DNA of 64,000 nt from Takakia lepidozioides (taxonomy: Eukaryota > Plantae > Bryophyta): positions 4,960,001 through 5,024,000 of the forward strand of contig CM060733.1 of NCBI GenBank assembly GCA_030704615.1. The letters run 5' to 3'. Of this stretch, positions 4,274 through 44,072 are shown piece after piece. The translations under genes and the position numbers were made by a program. Positions within the stretch are counted from its first letter, which is position 1, and every line of letters starts with the position of its first letter. Under the pieces are notes generated by a model. It ran no database searches. It was not told the DNA's origin and was given only the letters and a program-made list of their open reading frames with translations.

Positions 4274-6438
<2,165 letters not shown>

Positions 6439-8767
6439 AGTTATGAAGGACTTGACATCGTTGGACATTCAGGTACTGACATGGGTCTCTTGAGGAAGGA
6501 CAGGTTCTACTTACCTGCAAAAAGAGATTGCAAGTTTAAGTCGTGCTTTTCTGCTGGTCAGTGTTACAGCTTGAGCTGCATCAGTAGGACGTAACTGAAG
6601 GGGTGCTCTTTCAAGTGGTCTACCTCTGCCTTCTCCAGTTGTGTTTTTCTCCTAACACGTGGTGCCTCATTCCATAGCTTTCCTTTCCACTCTCCTCCTG
6701 CCCCTCATGCTGCATCACTGCTTGTTTGATGGCTTTGCATATCTCTCTTTTGCACTACTAAGATTTCACTTATCAGATATTTGAATAGGACATTTCTCTT
6801 GTCCTTGTATCTCTGTGTTTTGGGGGCACAGTCCTCCTTTTTTCATCTGCAGATAATCACGGCAATTTTTCTCTGGGGAAGCACTCTCAGTGTATAAAGT
6901 GAGCAAACATCTGCAAATGACTAAAGGCTAGTACATAAGAGCTCAGCAATGAGCTGCAGACAGATTGCATAGTGACAATGAAACCTTTCTGGGTGTTTTG
7001 GATGACAGGAGTTGTTTGTAATTAAGTGCAAGTACTACCACTTGGTAGCTTGTGTGTTCTGTGCAAGCTTATCTGTATCCTTAGGTTGTCATTGATCACC
7101 CTAAATTGAAATACTTTAAGCTGAATGTGATGATCGCCAACCATTCTAACACAAAGCTAGTTGATGTTTGGTATTTTATATTCATGCGGCTTGTTGATGT
7201 TCAAGGTTTGGACTCCACAACAGAAGGTAGATCTGGTTTCAAATGTCATGGATGACATCTTGTGCTGCCCCCATTTGTGAAGTACAGGATACAAACACTC
7301 CGGAAAATGTGTTTGGCTGTGTGGCAGGCAGATTCTGACTTGTAGGCAAGCAACATGGTTTTCACATACATGAGCTACAGTAAGGGTATGAATGACAATG
7401 CAGGTACAGGGGGATTCACCTGCAAGTTAACGATGGGTTTATGTGCTCCTTGCCCCCATAGCCCTTATTATTTCCTCAGTCAGAATCTTTGGCAAGCAGT
7501 GTGCCCACTGGTCTGCTGTAAGCATGTTGTAAGCAGGCCTACTGTTCTGAACTGGGCAGCTGGTACTGTATTCTTGACTGCAAACCTATGTCATGCCATA
7601 TATTTCTCTCCCCCTCTGTGCAGGTTCTTTCTTTTCTACCTTTGACTTGAATAACACAGCAAACCTCGGCTTGAATCCATGGACCACTAGTCAGACATAA
7701 ATAACACACCAATGGCTTCTTCAAAAAATGCCATACACAGTAACTAGGTCAAGATTTTAAATGGCCTGGTTCCATCATCAATGATGGCTGTCCTTCAGAA
7801 GCAAAGTTGGAGGTAAGTTAGCCAACAAACAATATGTTCATCAGAAATGCACATTGACTGGGTTAGTGTGGCAGGGAATGGGAATATCTGGGCTCAGAGT
7901 CAGAGAAAAAATGATGGTTTGAGCGATATTCCTAACCTGGTTAAACCTGGTCCCATCCGGTCTTCATCTTCCTGCATAGTTAACACCTCCTGAAATGTGT
8001 GCCCTTAACACTGTGGCGCACACCAAGGGAAGACATAAGACACGCCCTAACCCATAAATGATACGGTCCAGCCTTAATAATCGACTTTTGAAACCAAGTT
8101 AGTTATCCCTAGAGTGAGGCAATCAACATTATGTTGCAGATGCCCCTTGGAGACCTTGTTGCGCACCTTTTGGCGTGCTGCGTTCTTCTTCACCTGCCCT
8201 ACCCTATCCACCCTTGCTTCCTCAAGAAGGACTGACTTTCAAGCCAGAAGAAATAACCAAACTCAAATCTATCAATCAGGTTCCTGACTTCTCCAAACGA
8301 CCTAGAGACTTGGCCAACTACGGGAGTTATCCTCACCTGTTGCCCAGTTAATCACCATCCTCCATATAACGAGCTTCGCAAGACATTTACACACATACTC
8401 GGCAGATTCTACTTTTGTGTGCTCTTAAACCCTGATTTACGGTGTTGGATGCAAGGGCTGGTCGGGCGGCAGGACGTTGTTGAAGTTAAAGATCGATTGC
8501 AACTCTCTTTATTAGATTTCTGGTTGTTCGCCTCCGTCTCCATATCATCAACGAGCGCATCTCAATCTATCACCTGAATAAATTCTTATTGTTCACCCCT
8601 GAGTTTGCAAAAGTTCATTGCATTTCCATCTTGACGGTTTGATTTTCTTTATACATTGAGCTCATTCCTTCCTCTGCTGTTGTTCTCCTTCAAGTTCTAT
8701 TGCCCCAACGTTATTTTATGACCTTAGGTTCCAGAAGGGGACAGCTCGGGTCTGCGATTGGGGGCAT

Positions 8768-29724: not shown

Positions 29725-32700
29725 CCCCCACTCAACGAGTTACCAAATTAAGCACTTAACTACTCCCATCAAGCCTCGAAAGTTTTTTAGCACTAAGTTT
29801 TTTTTGTCAGTATGTCTGCAACCATGAAGTTGATGTTGCAATAGACAAGCTTGACAACTTCAGCTTCAGTCTTCTCTCGTACCAAATGATGATGAATCTC
29901 AATATGCTTTGTGCGAGCATGAAACATTGGATTTTTTGAGAAAGCAATACACTCTTGGTTGTCATCATATATGACCATGGTATCCCTCTTTGGATGACCA
30001 ATACTAGATAGAAATGATGATAATCATAATGTTTGTCTTGTAGCTTGAGATGCAACCATATATTCTGCCTCAGTCGAGGACATAACAATTGTAGATTGTT
30101 TTTTGTTGCTCCAGCTTACAGCTCCATTTGCTAGCATAAAAACATAGCCATATGTAGAGTGACGATCATCAACATTACCAGCCCAATCTGCATCACAATA
30201 GCCGTATAGCTCTGTGCTTTTGCAAGCACTATCTGAGATACCATATGAACCCACTTGATCCAACTGAACATTATCATTGTTCTTTCTCAAGCACAAACCA
30301 TAGTCCAGTGTGTCTCTTAGATAACGGAGAATCCGCTTTACTGCAAACCCAATGGAGTTGCAGGGTTAGCCACAAATTGGCTTACAACCCCCACTGCTTG
30401 TGCAATATCTGGCCTAGTACAGACCATTGCATACATGAGACTTCCCACAGCACTCTGATAGAGAACATCTCTCATTGTCTCCAAGTCTGCAGTACTCTTA
30501 GGACTCATCTCCTTTTTGAGTTTGCAATTTGGGACAAACGGGGTATTTACCCGCATACTTTCAGCCATACCAAAGCGTCTTAAGATATCTTCAAGATACT
30601 TACGCTGGTTCAGGTAAATCATTCGGTCTTGTCGAACACGAGTTACCAATACCCCCAAGCAGTACTGGATCTCTTTCAGATCCACCATCTCAAACTTCAT
30701 TGAGATATCGCTCTTTGTCTTTTTCAACAGAGCCTAGTCATTAGAGACCAAAATCAGATCATCAACGTACAATATTATGATCACAAAATAGTTTCCATGA
30801 GCCCTCTTATAGTAAACATTATGATCAGCAGAGCTCCTCTCAAACTCTTCAACCATGAAATATGTATCAATCTTAGCATTCCATGCCCTAGGGGATTGCT
30901 TCAAACCATACAAGGACTTGATGAGCGTACACACCTTCATCTCCTTCCTTTTTATAACAAATCCCTCCGGCTGGTCCATGTATATTTCTTCCATAAGATC
31001 TCCATTGAGAAAGGTTGTACACACATCCATCTAATGTACCTCAAGATTTTAAACAGCAGCAAACGCTAGAATCACTCGAATTGACTCCATCTGTGCAACA
31101 GGGGAGAAGGTTTCACTGTAATCAATACCTTCAATTTGCGAAAACCCCTTTGCAACCAAGCGCGCTTTGTATTTTGCTACAGAACCATCTGCATTGTACT
31201 TAACCTTGAAAATCCATTTGTAGCCAACGGACTGCCGTCCAGATGGAAGTTGAACAAGACTCTAAGTTTTATTATCCTGAAGAGATTTAAACTCAGATGC
31301 CATAGTTTCCTTCCAGTGTGAAGAGTTCCCACTCCTCATTGCATTTGACACATTTTGAGGTTCATCACTGTCAATGAAATAGGTAGAAGATACCTTTGAG
31401 GGTTTTTCAATCATAGTAGATTGTACCTCCTCCACAACTATCTCTTCAACAATTTTCTCTTCCATTTTATCTTCATGAGTCAGAGCCAAGTTCTCTTTTT
31501 CATAGTCCAAACTTGGAACTATTGTTTCCTGATGAAAGTTCCTGGACTCATTGAATATCACATCACGACTGATGATCACATACTTGCTCTCAAGATTATA
31601 CAACTTATATCCTTTGGTTTCTTCACAATGAAGATATATTTGATAACCAATGAAGATATATTTGATTGTTTTTTTATCCAATTTTTTCCTTATTTGTTTT
31701 GGAACATGGGCAAATGCAACACACCCAAAGACGCGCAAATGATCAACTGAAGGTTTTTCACCCTTTTAAACCTCTTCAGGTGTCTTTGTAAAGATTGCCT
31801 TAGTAAGAAGTCGATTCTAGAGGTATGCTGCAGTCGTTGCTGCTTCTACCCATAAATGGTGGTCCAACCTTATTTGTTGCAACATACACCTCACACTCTC
31901 AACAAGTGTTTGATTCTTCCTCTCTGCAACTCCATTCTATTCTGGCATATATAGTGTGGCTGATTGTTTCACAATACCATTCTTCATGTAGAACTGGTTA
32001 AAGTTCTTTGAGATGTACTCACCACCACCATCACACCGAAGAGCTTTGATCTTTTCTCCAGTTTGATTCTCCACCAAAACTTTGAATGCCTTGAACCCAT
32101 CAAGAATTCCAACTGCATCGTGTAGAGAAATGTTTTCCTGGAAAAATCATCAATGAAGGTCAAGAAATACTTTGCACCTCCATGAGATTCATTTGACATA
32201 GGACCGCATAGATCTGTATGAACCAACTCAAGAACCTTATTTGTTCGAGAACCTCCATCCTTTGGAAATGAGTTGCGATGGTGTTTACTGTACACACATC
32301 CGTCACAAAAACTCAAGATCCGATCTCCTGTAAGATCTATACCCTTAACCAGATTGTTAGCTGACATGCATGCCAAACTTTGCATTGAGACATGTCCAAG
32401 TCTCTAATGCCAGAGGTCACTCTGCTTGAGCGTAGTAGTACACTCCACATGTAAAGCCTGGACAACCATAATCAGCTTGTACAATTTTGCATCTTTCAGT
32501 ACCTCAGCTATCATTTCACTGCCAAACTTCACCCAACAATGATTGGTAGAAAATTCAACCGTAAGACCTTGCTCAGTTAGCTGACTAACTGACAATAGGT
32601 TCTTTGTCAATCCAGGAACAAAGAGAACTCCTCCGATCTCCTTCGACACTCTAGATAATAATTGAAACACAACAGTACATTTTCCATGGATATCAAGACT

Positions 32701-33919
32701 AGTACTGTTGTCTCCAAGATACACCTTGTGTCCCACAGATAGTTCTTTGTAGGTTGAGAATGCTTCCTTCTGGACATCATGTGCTGAGATGCCCCTGAAT
32801 CAATGAACCATACATCTCTACAACTCGTAGAGATTGACAAAGCTACAACAAGAAGTTCAGTTCTTTCAGCCAATGCTGAAACCTCATTTTGAAACCTCTT
32901 CTTCTTCTCATCGTCTAGTTTTTTCTTGAAGTAGTCACATGCATAGTGACCTCTCATGCCACAAAAGAAACAGGCTCCATGTTTCTTCTTCTTGATCTTA
33001 GTCCATTTCTTTGCAAAATTAACCATTGCCTTCTGAGACTTTGAACTTTCTGAAGTCTTGATATTCAATGCCATTGTAGCCTGAATTCTACCAAAGACAT
33101 GATTCTCTCGTTTGCAACGCATCTTTTCTTACAATAATTGTCCTGTAACTATGTCCATAGTCAGACCACTAGTATGTGTACCAAGAAATACGACCAATGT
33201 CTGATATGAAGGTGACAAACTTCCAAGAATAAATGCTAGATCTTCATCTGAAACTGAATGACCAATGCTGGACAAATGATCACTAATGATTTGAAGCTTA
33301 TCAATGTAATCTTGCACTGAGTTTCCTTCCTCCATCTTTAAGCTATATAACTCCTGGTTGAGATATAGCCGATTAACAACATGCTTCCTCTCAAAACTGA
33401 CACGGAGATTATTCCATGCTTCTCTAGCGGTTTTTGCATGTGCAACATGATGAAGTAAAGAATCTGCTACATTCAACAACATGGTTCCTTGAGCCAACTT
33501 ATATTTCTTCGCAAAAAGTTGTTGCTCAGGAGTCAACCCTGTGGCTATGATATCTCTATCTTCAGGCTGCAGTTGAACTGGTGCAACCGCTTCTCCTGAT
33601 GTGATCTCCGACAGATCTTTCTCACGAAGAATGAACTTCATCTTAATCTTCCATGTATGAAAATTGTGACCATCTAACTTCTCCACTCGGGTATGATCAG
33701 CAGAAGGTGCCATGATGCTAGTTTGATGTTTTGCCAACTATAAAACACCCTCAAACTTTCAGATCTAACTCCAAGCACTCAAGCTTTCAGATCTGACACC
33801 AAGCACTCAACTCCAAGCATTCAAGTTTTCAGATCTAAACCCAAACACTCAAGCCTATTCGTTGTAAATCAAATACTCATCTCCTTCTATCTCTCAGACA
33901 GAACCTTGCTCTAATACCA

Positions 33920-34794: not shown

Positions 34795-34825
<31 letters not shown>

Positions 34826-34862: not shown

Positions 34863-37800
34863 ATGGATCCTCAAAAGTTTCGGACTAGGATGGGGGACCT
34901 GGCTATGGGCACTGCCCTGGGGGCTGCCGCCCGCGACTACCAGAAAGTACAGCCATCTACTCTGTCTTGCACTTACGTCACTTGAAGCGGGTGTTTTGGA
35001 AGAAGAGGGTTCATTTCAGGAACTGTAAAGAGCGTTTTGACGTAAATGCCAGAGAGAGGTTTGAATGGTCTTGTTGTGATTGTAATGTGCATCCGATAAT
35101 TGAGTTTGGAAGAAGGTTGAACTTAGGGCATAGGGTTCAACTTGTGTCTGCTTCAATGAAATAATTTCCCAAAATGGGAGACCGCCATCAGTCACTCACT
35201 TCCCGCTATCTGGCGGCGATTGCTGATGATCACATGTTATGATAATCTTTGTGCACAAGTGTTGAAAATTTGAGTCTTCCCCGCTTCATCAACTTTTGAG
35301 CAGTGATTTGTTATCCTGTATGTAATTTCATAGATAGAATGGGGCTACATTTCGCGTAGATGCGTTTTATTGATTGTCTTTAGTGGGAGAAGGTGTTCGA
35401 CAATGGCTGAGATGTTCAGTCGACTCTCTTTCCTTTGTAGGAGGTCTGGCAGACTCTGAGTTGGAAGTGAGCAAGAAAGATTGACGAAGAAGGGACGCCT
35501 GTTTGGTATGCGATGCCAGTAACATGAGTGCTAGACTTGACTGAGGAGCCTACGAAGAGTCAAATGTCGTCGCTTGAAGTATCTCACCATAGATTTGTCC
35601 TAGTTCTTGGCAGGACGCATTGGGGGCGTGCCTGCCGTAAATATGGACGCACATGGAGGCACAGAGCTGCCATGGGAACTATAGAGGGGCATATTGCAAG
35701 TTATATGTGCTCGTAAAGGCCTCCCTTACAAATGCAACCCTTCAGGATATGTATGAAGTCAGTTTCCGCATGGATGGTTTAAGTATCTCACCATAGTTTG
35801 TCCTAGTTCTTGGCAGGACGCATTGGGGGCGTGCCTGCCGTAAACATGGACGCAGACTGAGGCACAGAGCTGCCATGGGAGCTATAGAGGAGCATATTGC
35901 AAGTTATATGTGCTCATAAAGGCCTCCCTTACAAATGCAACCCTTCAGGATGTGTATGAAGTCAGTCTCCGCATGGATGGTAGCTCTTAAGTTATGAAAT
36001 TGGTGGAGTGGGGCTACAGGAACTAGTAGCACAACATAAAGCGCAAGCAAGTGAACCTGTACATGAAGATGTGGATCTTGATGACCTTATGGATGTACGT
36101 GCCCTTCCTACCTCCTTAATCTTCCAATATAGTAGAGGTTGTGGTTGCAAAATGCCCCTATACTACATTCGGACAGGAGGGCCGAGAATTGACCAAAGAG
36201 AGTGGGAGGACTAGAGAGAGAGTGTGTCTCATGGATCTTTTCAGAGCTGATTCTAAGGGAGAGAGAAAATCTTAGTTGGTACAAGCCATGGATTTGTGAT
36301 TGAGTCCATGCCTGATACATTGCAATCTGTCTGTCTCTCCTTCCTGGAGTTTGCACCAAACACCTGGCAGATTCTGACTTCTTGTCATACTTTGTGGTCT
36401 CCATAAAGCACAGATGTCATGTCACCATTGATCTCAAGTATCAAGATGGAATTGAGTCTGTTACGGAGGTGACTGGTATGTGGGGAGAGGATAATAGCGG
36501 ATCCTGATGATGTCTCACAGTTCGAGGTTGCCATTTGGCATGCATGGTTGCAGGATCCTGAATTAGAGCGCCTCCATGCTGAGCGCATTGCTTCTCTCAA
36601 GGTGCATTTTCAGTTCAGTTTTGCTTTCTCCTATCTTTTCTAAGTTGTTGAGATGCATGTAGCTGCTATTTTAATCTGAAATTTGATTTGCATAAGGTAA
36701 ATGTTTTAAACCCTGATGCATAGGTGTTGGATTTTGTTGTAGTGCAGAAGGAGGCAGAGAAGAGGCAAGCATTGCAGAGGAAGGGTCATGGAGAATATAG
36801 AGAGGTATTATGGCTTCATATGCTTGGCAGCTACAGTTGTCTGCAAATTTCGTCGACCTCTCAGTTTCCTTCAATCCACGGCGGGTTTATACATTGACAA
36901 TGAATCAGGTGACAGAAGGTGATTTTCTAGGGGAGGTTACTGGAGGTCCACGGGTGGTGTGTCACTTTTTTCATCGAGAATTTATCCGCTGCAAGTATGC
37001 CATCTCTCTCTCTCTCTTTCTCTCTCCCTCTCTCCCTCCATCCCTCCCTGTGGCATCAAGGTTATGGCAAACAATGTCTTATGAGTACATTCTCTTTCTC
37101 TCTCTTCAAACCCCCTCAATCTTACTGCACTCGTATCCCCATCTGTCCACCTCCGTATCCCAACACTTGTTACCAACCAATCTCTTGGCAACTGCATGCA
37201 GTCTACTGTTATGATCACATACTGTGGAGGAGCATGAAGTATGAGTAGCCCTGCAACACTAAAATAGGGAGGAAGCACTGATTCTTGGACTGTTGATATT
37301 GGATGTGAAGGATTATGGACAAGCATATCAAGCTTCTTACTCCCAAATACTTCGACACAAAATTTATTTGTGTGGATGCAGAGGTATACCTACCTGTTCA
37401 TCCCTCTCATTACATTGTTGTTTTGCCATGTGGCATTTGCATTGCTATTATGCAATAATGACACTGCAGTACTGTATTTTCATCTCAAACACTCTTAATC
37501 TGAAGTGTCTTCTAATTTGTAAGGACATGGTTCAAAAATTGGATAGTGCTTTAAGGTTGAAGCTGAGGTACCTCCAACCTGTGGTGCTTCCACTTTTGCA
37601 GAATTGTCCCTTCTTTGTTGCGAAGTTGGCAATCAAGGTGCTGCCTTGTGTCATTTTGTTCAGGTGTGCTTTACTCATTCATCTTGGTGCTTAAATGCAA
37701 GTATAACCAGCGAAGGGTCAAGAGAGAAGTAGAATCATCAAGTGAAGGTGCTTGACAATAAAAACAATGTTGAACAGAATCCATTGTGTCCATTTCAGAG

Positions 37801-38587
37801 CCACTTAGCCTTGGTCCTGAGCTTGTCAATGAATGAACAAATGCTTTTTTCCATGAAAGGGAGTTCAGAATGTTGTAACTTAGACATAATTCATTTTTAG
37901 GTGTCTGGTTCAAAAGATCTGGACAGTTGTCTATTTCTGCAGGGACGGAGTCGCTGTTGACAGAATAGTGGGATTTCAAGAGCTTGGGGGAGTTGATGAC
38001 TTTAAGACCAGTGCCCTGGAGTCCCGGCTCTTAAAGACAGGTGATATCTTGTGTCCCTTAAGGCTTGATGGGCTGAGGCTTTCATGTTAATATCTGTTGC
38101 TTCATCCCCTAAACTTGTAGTGCTACATAATCAAAGAAATGGTTTGATAGTAGTGCAGTAACATCATCATGCAGTCATACTGTGTATAGCTGGGGAGTGC
38201 CTTGCATCAAACATTCACCTTTTCTTCTGGAATTTAATTGTCATGGGAACAGGAGATCCAGCCATATATTACCTCTTCTTGATCTGTTTCGTGTGCTTGT
38301 CGGTGACTCTGCTCACAGCTCATAAGGAAGAAATGTGGACACCACTGCAAAGGACTTTAGAGAATGAGGAGATAGTTCATAGACTTCTACTGAGAATTGA
38401 GTCTTCTGTGTTCTTATAAGCAACCTGCAGCATGCTAGACAGCCATCAAGTTTTATGCATCATGACTTTTCGTGTTCTTTTCCTTGCAGGCCTGATCATT
38501 GCCAAGACAGTTGTGGATGAGGATGGTGAGGAGATGCTGAAGAGGAGCGTGCGATCCACAACTCATGCAGACTCCGATTCCGATTAA
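34863..38587 (+). CDS. TXNDC9: Thioredoxin domain-containing protein 9 / phosducin-like protein 3 homolog (9 exons: 34863-34946, 36020-36094, 36554-36601, 36748-36804, 36909-36994, 37311-37383, 37602-37663, 37943-38040, 38490-38587)
   Basis: Spliced translation AARDYQK|ELVAQ..DLDDLMD|DPELERLHAERIASLK|KEAEKRQ..GHGEYRE|VTEGDFLGEVT..VVCHFFHREFIRCK|IMDKH..DTKFICVDAE|NCPFFVAKLAIKVLPCVILFR|DGVAVDRIVGFQELGGVDDF..DSDSD*. This matches plant PLP3/TXNDC9. Confidence 0.93.
35099..35237 (+). ncRNA. Candidate intronic box H/ACA sno/scaRNA, target unassigned
   Basis: Hairpin (upper stem aggttgaac/gttcaactt), H box AAATAA at 35159-35164, second hairpin (catcagt/gctgatg, ccgcta/tggcgg), ACA at 35232-35234. 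Each box lies 15 nt from its upper stem. Confidence 0.5.
35594..35733 (+). ncRNA. Box H/ACA scaRNA candidate, copy 1 (predicted U5 snRNA loop-1 pseudouridylation guide)
   Basis: 5' hairpin gtcc/ggac plus ggcaggacgc/gcgtgcctgcc, H-like ACATGG at 35651-35656, 3' hairpin ggga/tccc plus gggcatat/atgtgctc, ACA at 35728-35730. Pockets are complementary to GCCUUUUACUAAAGAAU. Confidence 0.75.
35797..35936 (+). ncRNA. Box H/ACA scaRNA candidate, copy 2 (tandem duplicate, offset 203 bp)
   Basis: Same architecture, with H-like AGACTG at 35854-35859 and ACA at 35931-35933. Guide sequences gttctt/gtaaa and ctatag/aaaggc are identical to copy 1. Confidence 0.75.
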
Positions 38588-41735: not shown

Positions 41736-44072
41736 GTGACTCAGAGTTATGAGCTATGCAGGATGACATGGTTGAATCAGGCACACTGCTTTGAGTCCAG
41801 CATGACCACTGACTTTCAGAGAGGAGCACGAGGGGGAGTCAACAAGGACATGTCTGCTACTTGCAGGGACGTGATGACACTCTGTAAGGCAGGACAGATG
41901 AAAGAGGCGCTACACTTTTTGAACCAACGAGGTATTTTGGCAGATTCCAATACTTATGTCTGTCTCCTGCAGGAGTGCATCAAGATGAAAAGCCTAGCAG
42001 AAGGAAAGCAAGTGCATGCGCACATCATCGAAAGTGCATTCAAGCCAAATATCTTTTTACTCAACACCCTTGTGAACATGTATGCCAAGTGCGGGAGCTT
42101 GGTGGCTGCACGCAAAGTGTTTGACAAAATGCCTGAACATGATTTGTTCTCGTGGACTATAATGATAGCAGGCTATGCCAAGCATGGGTGTGGTAAGGAA
42201 GCTTTCAAAATCTACGAGGAAATGTTACGGGAAGGGGTGACACCCAGTAGGGTCACCTTCATTTGCATTCTCAATGCATGCGCCAGCCTGGGAGCCTTAA
42301 ACAAGGGCAAAGAGGTCCACTCTGATGTCATGAAAGCTGGAATCGCATCAGATATTGTGGTAGAGACTGCCCTGGCTAACATGTATGCCAAATGCGGGAG
42401 TATGAAGGATGCACGTCAAGTGTTTGACAATATATCTCGACGGGATGTGGTCTTATGGACTGCTATGATAGCAGGATATGCTCAGCAGGGGTGTGGTATG
42501 GAAGCATTCAAGATCTATGAGCAAATGAGGCAGGAAGGGGTGATACCAGATAGGGTCGCATTCATTTGCATTCTAAATGCATGTGCCAGCCTGGCAGACC
42601 TGGGCAAGGGCAAAGAGGTCCAAGCCGACATCATCAAACTAGGAATTGTATCAGATATCATTCTGGAGACTGCTCTTGTACAGATGTATTGCAAATGTGG
42701 AAGCTTGAAGGACGCACGTCAAGTGTTTGACAATATGGCTCGACGAGATGTGGTCGTATGGACCACAATGATAGCCGGGTATGCTCAGCATGGGTGTGGT
42801 AGGGAGGTTTTTGAGATCTATGAGCAAATGATGCAGGAAGGGGTGAGGCTGGACATGGTCACGCTGATTTGTGTTCTCAATGCGTGTGCCAGCCTGAGAG
42901 CACTGGAAAAGGGCAAAGAGGTCCATGCTGACATCAGCAAAGCTGGAATTGTCGTAGATGTCACTCTGGAGAATGCTGTTATTGACATGTATACCAAATG
43001 TGGGAGCATAAAAGATGCACGCCGGGTGTTCAATAATATGGCAGAACGAGATGTGGTATCATGGAATGTAATGATAGCAGGATACGGTCAATGTGGTTTT
43101 GGCATGGAGGCTTTGGAGATCTATGAGCACATGATACAGGAAGGGGTGATGCCAGACAGGGTCACTTTCACTTCCGTTCTCAATGCATGTGCCAGCATGG
43201 GAGCCCTGGAAAAGGGAAAAATGGTCCATGCTGATATCATCAAAGCTGGAATTGTAGGCGATATTATTCTGGAGAGTACGGTGGCTAACATGTATGCCAA
43301 ATGTGGGAGCATGAAGGATGCATGTCAAGTATTTGACAATATGGCTCAACGAGATGTGGTGTCATGGAATGCTATGATGGCAGGATATGCTCAGCAAGGG
43401 TGTGGTAGGGAGGCTTTGGAGATTTACGAGCAAATGATTCAGCAAGGCGTGTTGCCCGATAAGGTCACATTCATTTGCGTTCTCAATGCATGTGCCAGCC
43501 TGGCAGCCCTGGAAAAGGGCAAAGAGGTTCATGCTGACATCAGCAAAGCTGGGATTGCGCCAGATGTTGTTTTGGAGAATGCCCTCGTTGATATGTATGC
43601 AAAATGTGGGAGCATAAAGGATGCTCGTCAGGTGTTTGAAAATATAGCTCAGCGAGATGTAGTGTCATGGAGTACAATGATAACAGGATATGCTCAGCAT
43701 GGGAATGGTAGAGAGGCCCTCCAAGTATTTGAACAAATGCTACAGAAAGGCTTGAAGCCAAACAGCATTACCTTTATATGCCTTCTCTCTGCATGTAGTC
43801 ATGGGGGCCTAGTGGATGAAGGCTGTCACTACTTTGATTCCATGTGTCGAGATCATGGCCTCACCCCCACATTGGATCATTTTTGCTGCATAGTGGATCT
43901 CCTTGGCCGTGCGGGGCAATTGGATGAGGCAGAGGACTTTGTGAAGCAAATGCCCATGGAACCTGGTGCTGAGGTTTGGGGAGCCTTCCTTGGTGCCTGC
44001 AGAGTGCATGGTGATACACAACGAGCAGAACGTGCAGCAAAATGTCTTCTCAAGTCAGATCCAGATCCATAG
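41736..44072 (+). CDS. PLS-class pentatricopeptide repeat protein (about 20 P/L/S motifs plus E1), truncated before E2/DYW
   Basis: Regular triplets MYAKCGS..DAR.VF / DVVSWN.MIAGYAQ.G / TFICVLNACASL.AL.KGK.VH, terminal P2-L2-S2 (LLSACSHGGLVDEG, VDLLGRAG) and E1 (VWGAFLGACRVHG). The start codon is uncertain (first ATG at 41763 or an upstream exon). Confidence 0.93.
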   Translation: MTQSYELCRMTWLNQAHCFESSMTTDFQRGARGGVNKDMSATCRDVMTLCKAGQMKEALHFLNQRGILADSNTYVCLLQECIKMKSLAEGKQVHAHIIESAFKPNIFLLNTLVNMYAKCGSLVAARKVFDKMPEHDLFSWTIMIAGYAKHGCGKEAFKIYEEMLREGVTPSRVTFICILNACASLGALNKGKEVHSDVMKAGIASDIVVETALANMYAKCGSMKDARQVFDNISRRDVVLWTAMIAGYAQQGCGMEAFKIYEQMRQEGVIPDRVAFICILNACASLADLGKGKEVQADIIKLGIVSDIILETALVQMYCKCGSLKDARQVFDNMARRDVVVWTTMIAGYAQHGCGREVFEIYEQMMQEGVRLDMVTLICVLNACASLRALEKGKEVHADISKAGIVVDVTLENAVIDMYTKCGSIKDARRVFNNMAERDVVSWNVMIAGYGQCGFGMEALEIYEHMIQEGVMPDRVTFTSVLNACASMGALEKGKMVHADIIKAGIVGDIILESTVANMYAKCGSMKDACQVFDNMAQRDVVSWNAMMAGYAQQGCGREALEIYEQMIQQGVLPDKVTFICVLNACASLAALEKGKEVHADISKAGIAPDVVLENALVDMYAKCGSIKDARQVFENIAQRDVVSWSTMITGYAQHGNGREALQVFEQMLQKGLKPNSITFICLLSACSHGGLVDEGCHYFDSMCRDHGLTPTLDHFCCIVDLLGRAGQLDEAEDFVKQMPMEPGAEVWGAFLGACRVHGDTQRAERAAKCLLKSDPDP

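Follow-up and report, generated by a model that had tools for sequence, protein, structure and literature searches.

The analysed window, 64,000 nucleotides of the Takakia lepidozioides genome, contains a gene for phosducin-like protein 3 (PLP3/TXNDC9; Table 1). Exon-by-exon comparison of the encoded protein with PLP3 homologues gave the mosses Ceratodon, Sphagnum and Physcomitrium as top full-length matches. Tandem Repeats Finder detected a repeat with a period of 203 bp, 2.0 copies and 95% identity at positions 35577-35981. A preliminary description of this DNA had placed a ~203-bp duplication in intron 1 of TXNDC9, and the repeat finder and the per-exon tblastn agree on this location. A third copy of the repeated RNA was not found in the 64-kb window. 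The possibility that the repeat is coding sequence was rejected, as the GT-AG intron that contains it is bordered by exons for consecutive PLP3 residues.

The neighbourhood holds several other features. Just upstream of PLP3, ORF translations on the reverse strand (30000-33900) indicate a broken copia-type retrotransposon with gag, integrase, reverse transcriptase and RNase H pieces in several frames, and 28/42-bp repeats occur with it at 33739-33878. Two microsatellites of the host gene, AG in its 5' region (34795-34821) and TC in intron 5 (37003-37038), are mutually complementary and 2.2 kb apart. An intronless forward-strand PPR gene of 778 codons (41736-44072) has a repeat period of 303 bp and appears to be of the PLS type by eye. 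Forward-strand ORFs at 4300-6440 resemble UDP-sulfoquinovose synthase (SQD1), and those from 8768 onwards resemble exons for tripeptidyl peptidase II.

Table 1. Features of the PLP3 locus and of the two RNA copies; adding 203 to an element's position in copy 1 gives its position in copy 2.
Feature	Position (copy 1 where duplicated)	Position in copy 2	Strand	Basis
PLP3/TXNDC9 host gene, 9 exons	34863-38587		+	per-exon tblastn of plant PLP3 proteins, splice sites, homologue names
PLP3 exon 1	34863-34946		+	per-exon tblastn
PLP3 intron 1 (GT...AG), houses both repeat units	34947-36019		+	splice sites
PLP3 exon 2, start	36020		+	per-exon tblastn
snoR103-like H/ACA RNA, copy 1	35594-35733		+	Rfam RF01213, fold, moss orthologues; ends predicted from start of 5' stem and ACA + 3 nt
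snoR103-like H/ACA RNA, copy 2		35797-35936	+	Rfam RF01213, fold
5' pocket including upper stem (strands GTTCTT 35603-35608 and GTAAA 35637-35641)	35603-35641	35806-35844	+	pairing with U5; five-base cores invariant among moss copies
H-like box ANANNG	35651-35656	35854-35859	+	position and spacing
Small hinge hairpin, insertion relative to the Rfam model	35658-35671	35861-35874	+	100% of alignment cells paired; both-side changes in 2 of 4 pairs
3' pocket including upper stem (strands CTATAG 35679-35684 and AAAGGC 35715-35720)	35679-35720	35882-35923	+	pairing with U5
ACA box	35728-35730	35931-35933	+	ACA or AUA equally spaced in all intact moss copies
Spacer between RNA copies, 63 nt	35734-35796		+	duplicated along with the RNA

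Fold and family of the repeat units

Folding and alignment give both copies a hairpin-hinge-hairpin-tail structure with one pocket per hairpin. The order hairpin, ANANNG box, hinge hairpin, hairpin and ACA had been described before, and each element was found at its claimed place. The spacings were likewise reproduced from the sequence: the H-like box (ACATGG in copy 1, AGACTG in copy 2) follows the start of the right guide strand of the 5' pocket by 14 nt, and the ACA box follows that of the 3' pocket by 13 nt. Neither 140-nt unit contains a box C motif or matches a C/D family in Rfam, indicating an RNA of the H/ACA type only. The 3' end of the ~140-nt RNA would be expected 3 nt past the ACA. 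The 5' hairpin alone folds well (z -3.1 to -3.3) and the whole ~140-nt RNA moderately better than shuffled sequences (z -1.6 for copy 1 and -2.3 for copy 2); copy 1 has a weak 3' hairpin, which is missing from the centroid fold. The spacer has no notable structure (z +0.9) and is not conserved in other mosses.

Membership of an already catalogued plant snoR family had been suspected, and the family is snoR103 (Rfam RF01213). It is the best family for both copies, matching over model positions 1-106 with 36.2 bits (E 0.0026) for copy 2 and 31.1 bits (E 0.027) for copy 1. No Rfam family matches the window at gathering level, and snoR103 becomes visible only in a scan by E-value. The gathering cut-off of RF01213, 50 bits, is a database threshold and not a biological feature; since both copies fall below it, they are not formal Rfam members and we class them as orthologues on the other grounds presented here. 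RF01213 is the top family for all intact moss copies; besides the two of the window, five moss copies match over the full model, and scores in other mosses range from 29 to 44 bits. The model contains neither the 5' arm of the first hairpin nor the hinge insertion.

In Arabidopsis, snoR103 is a pure H/ACA RNA whose first and second pockets are predicted to guide U5 Psi50 and Psi47, corresponding to human Psi46 and Psi43, and these sites have been validated in human and legume U5 (PMC2685112). The RNAs snoR101-104 were listed as the first plant scaRNAs by Kim et al. in 2010 (PMC2875012). In the literature examined, the U5 targets of snoR103 itself appear so far to be predictions. The idea that one RNA serves two U5 sites that are divided between guides in humans thus matches the published description of snoR103 as a predicted guide; this arrangement had been presented as surprising, but dual U5 targeting by snoR103 was already published in 2009. 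Nor do the repeats form a cluster of different RNAs, as had been proposed: the second is a duplicate of the first. We conclude that the moss orthologue of snoR103, an H/ACA RNA predicted to guide modification of two U5 uridines, is in all likelihood present here in two copies that arose by recent tandem duplication.

Orthologues and history in moss PLP3 genes

Orthologous PLP3 loci were reached with the exon at 37944-38039 as query. Intact copies of the RNA are present in intron 1 of PLP3 in Sphagnum and in intron 7 in Ceratodon, Physcomitrium and two moss-like contigs (L001 and L002), of which L002 holds an additional, gap-interrupted copy. Column identity among five moss sequences amounts to 98% in the guides, 77% in the stems, 66% at other unpaired positions and 41% in the flanks. 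With a hand-set structure and uncorrected for kinship, 92% of stem cells are paired and 8 of 33 pairs show changes on both sides; controls with partners slid by 1-3 columns had 29-52% of cells paired. The hinge hairpin shows complete pairing in each of the seven sequences (7/7), with both-side changes included, and so is a real element; an Amborella sequence in a published supplement has a long hinge too. Conservation in orthologous introns had been asked for as a check in the preliminary description, and it was found in the form of near-invariant guides and covarying stems in moss PLP3 introns. Among the mosses no other conserved sequence could be aligned in the introns of PLP3. No snoR103 copy was found in PLP3 of Marchantia, of Calypogeia, of Chara, where the gene is intronless, or in the Arabidopsis PLP3 gene compared.

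Intron 1 of the PLP3 gene on contig L002 (L002:2290-3150) carries, as a separate feature, about three repeats of a ~300-nt sequence in which TGATG and CTGA motifs occur and which has no Rfam match.

That the structure arose by chance in a neutral duplication of intron sequence, or that the units are two silent pseudogenes, would agree with the modest folding scores of the whole RNA and with the divergence between the copies, which inside the RNA (7/140) is not lower than in the spacer. We regard this as very improbable given that the window copies share 78-81% identity with the Sphagnum copy of the same intron while the remainder of the intron is unalignable, and that their guides are intact, whereas the intron-1 copies of Ceratodon and Physcomitrium, described below, are visibly in decay.

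The two copies differ by nine substitutions in total. It had been claimed that these differences spare the guides; indeed, none of the nine falls into the 23 guide nucleotides, but this is not significant (P 0.29). They had also been said to keep the stems. Both changes named, G-U to A-U (35688/35891) and A-C to G-C (35678/35881), are real, but the position of the latter is unpaired in other mosses. Three of the nine substitutions coincide exactly with the free (N) positions of the H box, which number three; this post-hoc observation is as expected if its two As are constrained. H/ACA RNAs have an ANANNA box some 14-15 nt away from the target; in both copies the last base of the box is G, with the first two As and the right distance kept. 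The same alignment columns read ANANNA in Sphagnum, Ceratodon intron 7 and L002 and end in G or U in two other orthologues.

Single-hairpin guide RNAs have been described for Chlamydomonas and trypanosomes. It is conceivable that the units are cut into two such guides. The ACA (copy 1) or AGA (copy 2) after hairpin 1 would then serve as terminal box, and the hinge hairpin would signal processing; the sixth base of the H box is, in agreement with this, not fixed as A among mosses. We give this hardly any weight, because the canonical ANANNA stands in the same place in the three orthologues just named and Arabidopsis snoR103-2 was described as a single RNA of 132 nt (PMC2685112).

With regard to the history of the moss snoR103 orthologue, the RNA is confined to intron 1 in the window and in Sphagnum. 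Ceratodon combines the intact copy in intron 7 with a diverged copy in intron 1 (L010:2940-3080), in which the 5' (Psi46) pocket is kept and the 3' pocket is closed into a helix and unpaired with U5; this copy is either decaying or a one-pocket survivor. Similarly, Physcomitrium patens has an intact snoR103-like RNA in intron 7 of PLP3B (L138:3964-4104, 40.1 bits) and in intron 1 an eroded remnant (at about 2170-2300 of L138) that has features in common with the Ceratodon intron-1 copy. In an unrooted tree, the copies of the window and of Sphagnum are split off from every other copy with 100% support, and those of the window group together. The simplest reading is that intron 1 was the ancestral place, that the RNA was copied to intron 7 in the Ceratodon/Physcomitrium lineage with the old copy decaying, and that the tandem duplication in Takakia was independent and recent. 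It is very probable that snoR103 already existed in the ancestor shared by mosses and flowering plants and that it moved from one intron of PLP3 to another. In a previous survey, the count of snoR103 was zero for Physcomitrium, for Selaginella and for pine, with none outside angiosperms (PMC5122169 supplement 2). Because an intact copy is present in intron 7 of PLP3, the zero for Physcomitrium represents a detection limit. We found no literature on intron-to-intron duplication of moss snoR103 and nothing relevant on moss scaRNAs and ANANNG boxes.

Pairing with U5 and proposed function

The pockets were scanned against four Rfam-verified plant U5 genes from species other than Takakia. These genes were retrieved from metagenome contigs via a preset loop-1 pattern, so that they are selected for this pattern, and confirmed with Rfam. 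On all four, the best site of the 5' pocket is the uridine after the loop-1 AC, with 10 Watson-Crick pairs and 1 G-U pair, and the best site of the 3' pocket is the uridine three bases earlier, with 11 pairs and one A-A mismatch. We take these uridines to be the equivalents of human positions 46 and 43, respectively. The earlier assignment of the 5' pocket to the Psi46 equivalent and of the 3' pocket, with one mismatch, to the Psi43 equivalent was hence reproduced computationally on plant U5 and is the same as in Arabidopsis snoR103. As background, 0-1 of the 35,148 uridines in the window score as well as the U5 sites.

With U5, U1 and U4 as the RNAs scanned, the U5 match might be incidental to a main target in rRNA or in another snRNA such as U2 or U6. 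Such a target is extremely improbable, as two independent pockets pick known U5 pseudouridine sites three bases apart, as published, and score lower on U1 and U4. At the Ceratodon and Physcomitrium loci we also noticed weak Rfam matches to the nematode H/ACA RNA ceN105 (L010:4714-4816 and L138:3964-4102), which overlap the moss copies and arise from a similar 5' pocket; ceN105 may have the same U5 site as its target.

The A-A mismatch of the 3' pocket occurs in both window copies and is peculiar to this genome among the mosses compared; the pocket pairs with U5 at 12/12 positions in Sphagnum, Ceratodon intron 7, Physcomitrium and L001. An altered U5 is an unlikely cause, because the 5' pocket still reads A at the same U5 position. 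The 3' upper stem of the window copies contains a G-A/G-G mismatch absent from other mosses, and two stem pairs that other mosses keep are lost. With the pocket mismatch and the lost stem pairs in both copies, the Psi43 guide may be weaker here. They could even point to an RNA in partial decay, in which the 3' hairpin has drifted, so that good function is limited to the 5' (Psi46) pocket or stability to a single copy. The absence of the copy 1 3' hairpin from the centroid fold fits this reading, and the Ceratodon intron-1 copy shows that the 3' pocket is able to decay first. In yeast, H/ACA guides need a minimum of 8 guide pairs and tolerate single mid-duplex mismatches (PMC6049503). The 11 pairs left in the 3' pocket exceed this minimum, no pair adjacent to the target is lost, neither the right guide strand nor the distance to the ACA has changed, and the window holds no further copy. 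We therefore consider partial decay unlikely, but not negligible. It is improbable that snoR103 works differently here altogether, either as single-hairpin guides arising from the ANANNG box and the hinge hairpin or with a 3' pocket that has lost Psi43 or gained another target.

For two functional copies of snoR103, we infer the following pathway. Both would be transcribed within intron 1 of the PLP3 pre-mRNA. Maturation of plant snoRNA precursors is believed to begin with endonucleolytic cleavage and to proceed by trimming (PMC2875012). Since the intron holds two RNAs, their separation would require cleavage within the 63-nt spacer, followed by exonuclease trimming to two RNAs of ~140 nt, which would bind CBF5/NAP57, NOP10, NHP2 and GAR1. 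The 5' pocket would leave the uridine after the loop-1 AC unpaired (human Psi46, Arabidopsis Psi50), and the 3' pocket would present the uridine that precedes it by three bases, which is Psi43 in humans and Psi47 in Arabidopsis. As the two target helices overlap in U5, one U5 molecule would presumably be visited by the two pockets in turn. The pseudouridylation of loop 1 would probably take place in Cajal bodies.

The CAB box of scaRNAs is located in an apical loop and has the consensus ugAG. UGAG is absent from the apical loops of both copies. The 3' loop reads CAAG; its AAG, which every intact moss copy shares with the Rfam consensus, is a possible CAB box.

Significance and comparison with known guide RNAs

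Overall, the result is a modest one. The RNA type is already known; what is new is that it occurs in mosses and that it has moved from one intron to another. The U5-modifying guide family is thereby extended to mosses, a group from which, like lycophytes and pine, the survey had it absent (PMC5122169 supplement 2), and its presence there implies an origin of the two-site guide as early as that of land plants. The apparently single intact copy at the Physcomitrium locus, in intron 7 of PLP3, could be used in gene targeting to probe the role of the U5 loop-1 pseudouridines in plant splicing.

Like the window RNA, Arabidopsis snoR103-1 and snoR103-2 are intronic, belong to the H/ACA type only, measure about 130-140 nt and have the same pocket-to-site order (PMC2685112). 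Arabidopsis snoR103 (Rfam RF01213) and the window RNA also have the GUAAAUAUGGAC block and the AAG of the 3' loop in common. The host genes differ, At4g30680 in Arabidopsis and PLP3/TXNDC9 here. In contrast to Arabidopsis snoR103, the window RNA has an H box ending in G, one pocket mismatch and two tandem copies, and it departs from the snoR103 model by a 13-nt hinge insertion that forms the covarying hairpin.

In humans, the equivalent U5 sites Psi43 and Psi46 are guided by ACA57 (SCARNA11), U85 and U89 (PMC2685112). These are separate RNAs, and U85 and U89 are C/D-H/ACA hybrids, unlike the window RNA; none of the three gave an Rfam match over the window copies. Cis-duplication of snoRNAs between introns of one host gene is known in animals (PMC2817437). 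The case described here concerns mosses: the copying runs from intron 1 to intron 7 in Ceratodon and Physcomitrium, where the old copy is at two stages of decay, and tandem copies lie within one intron of the window.
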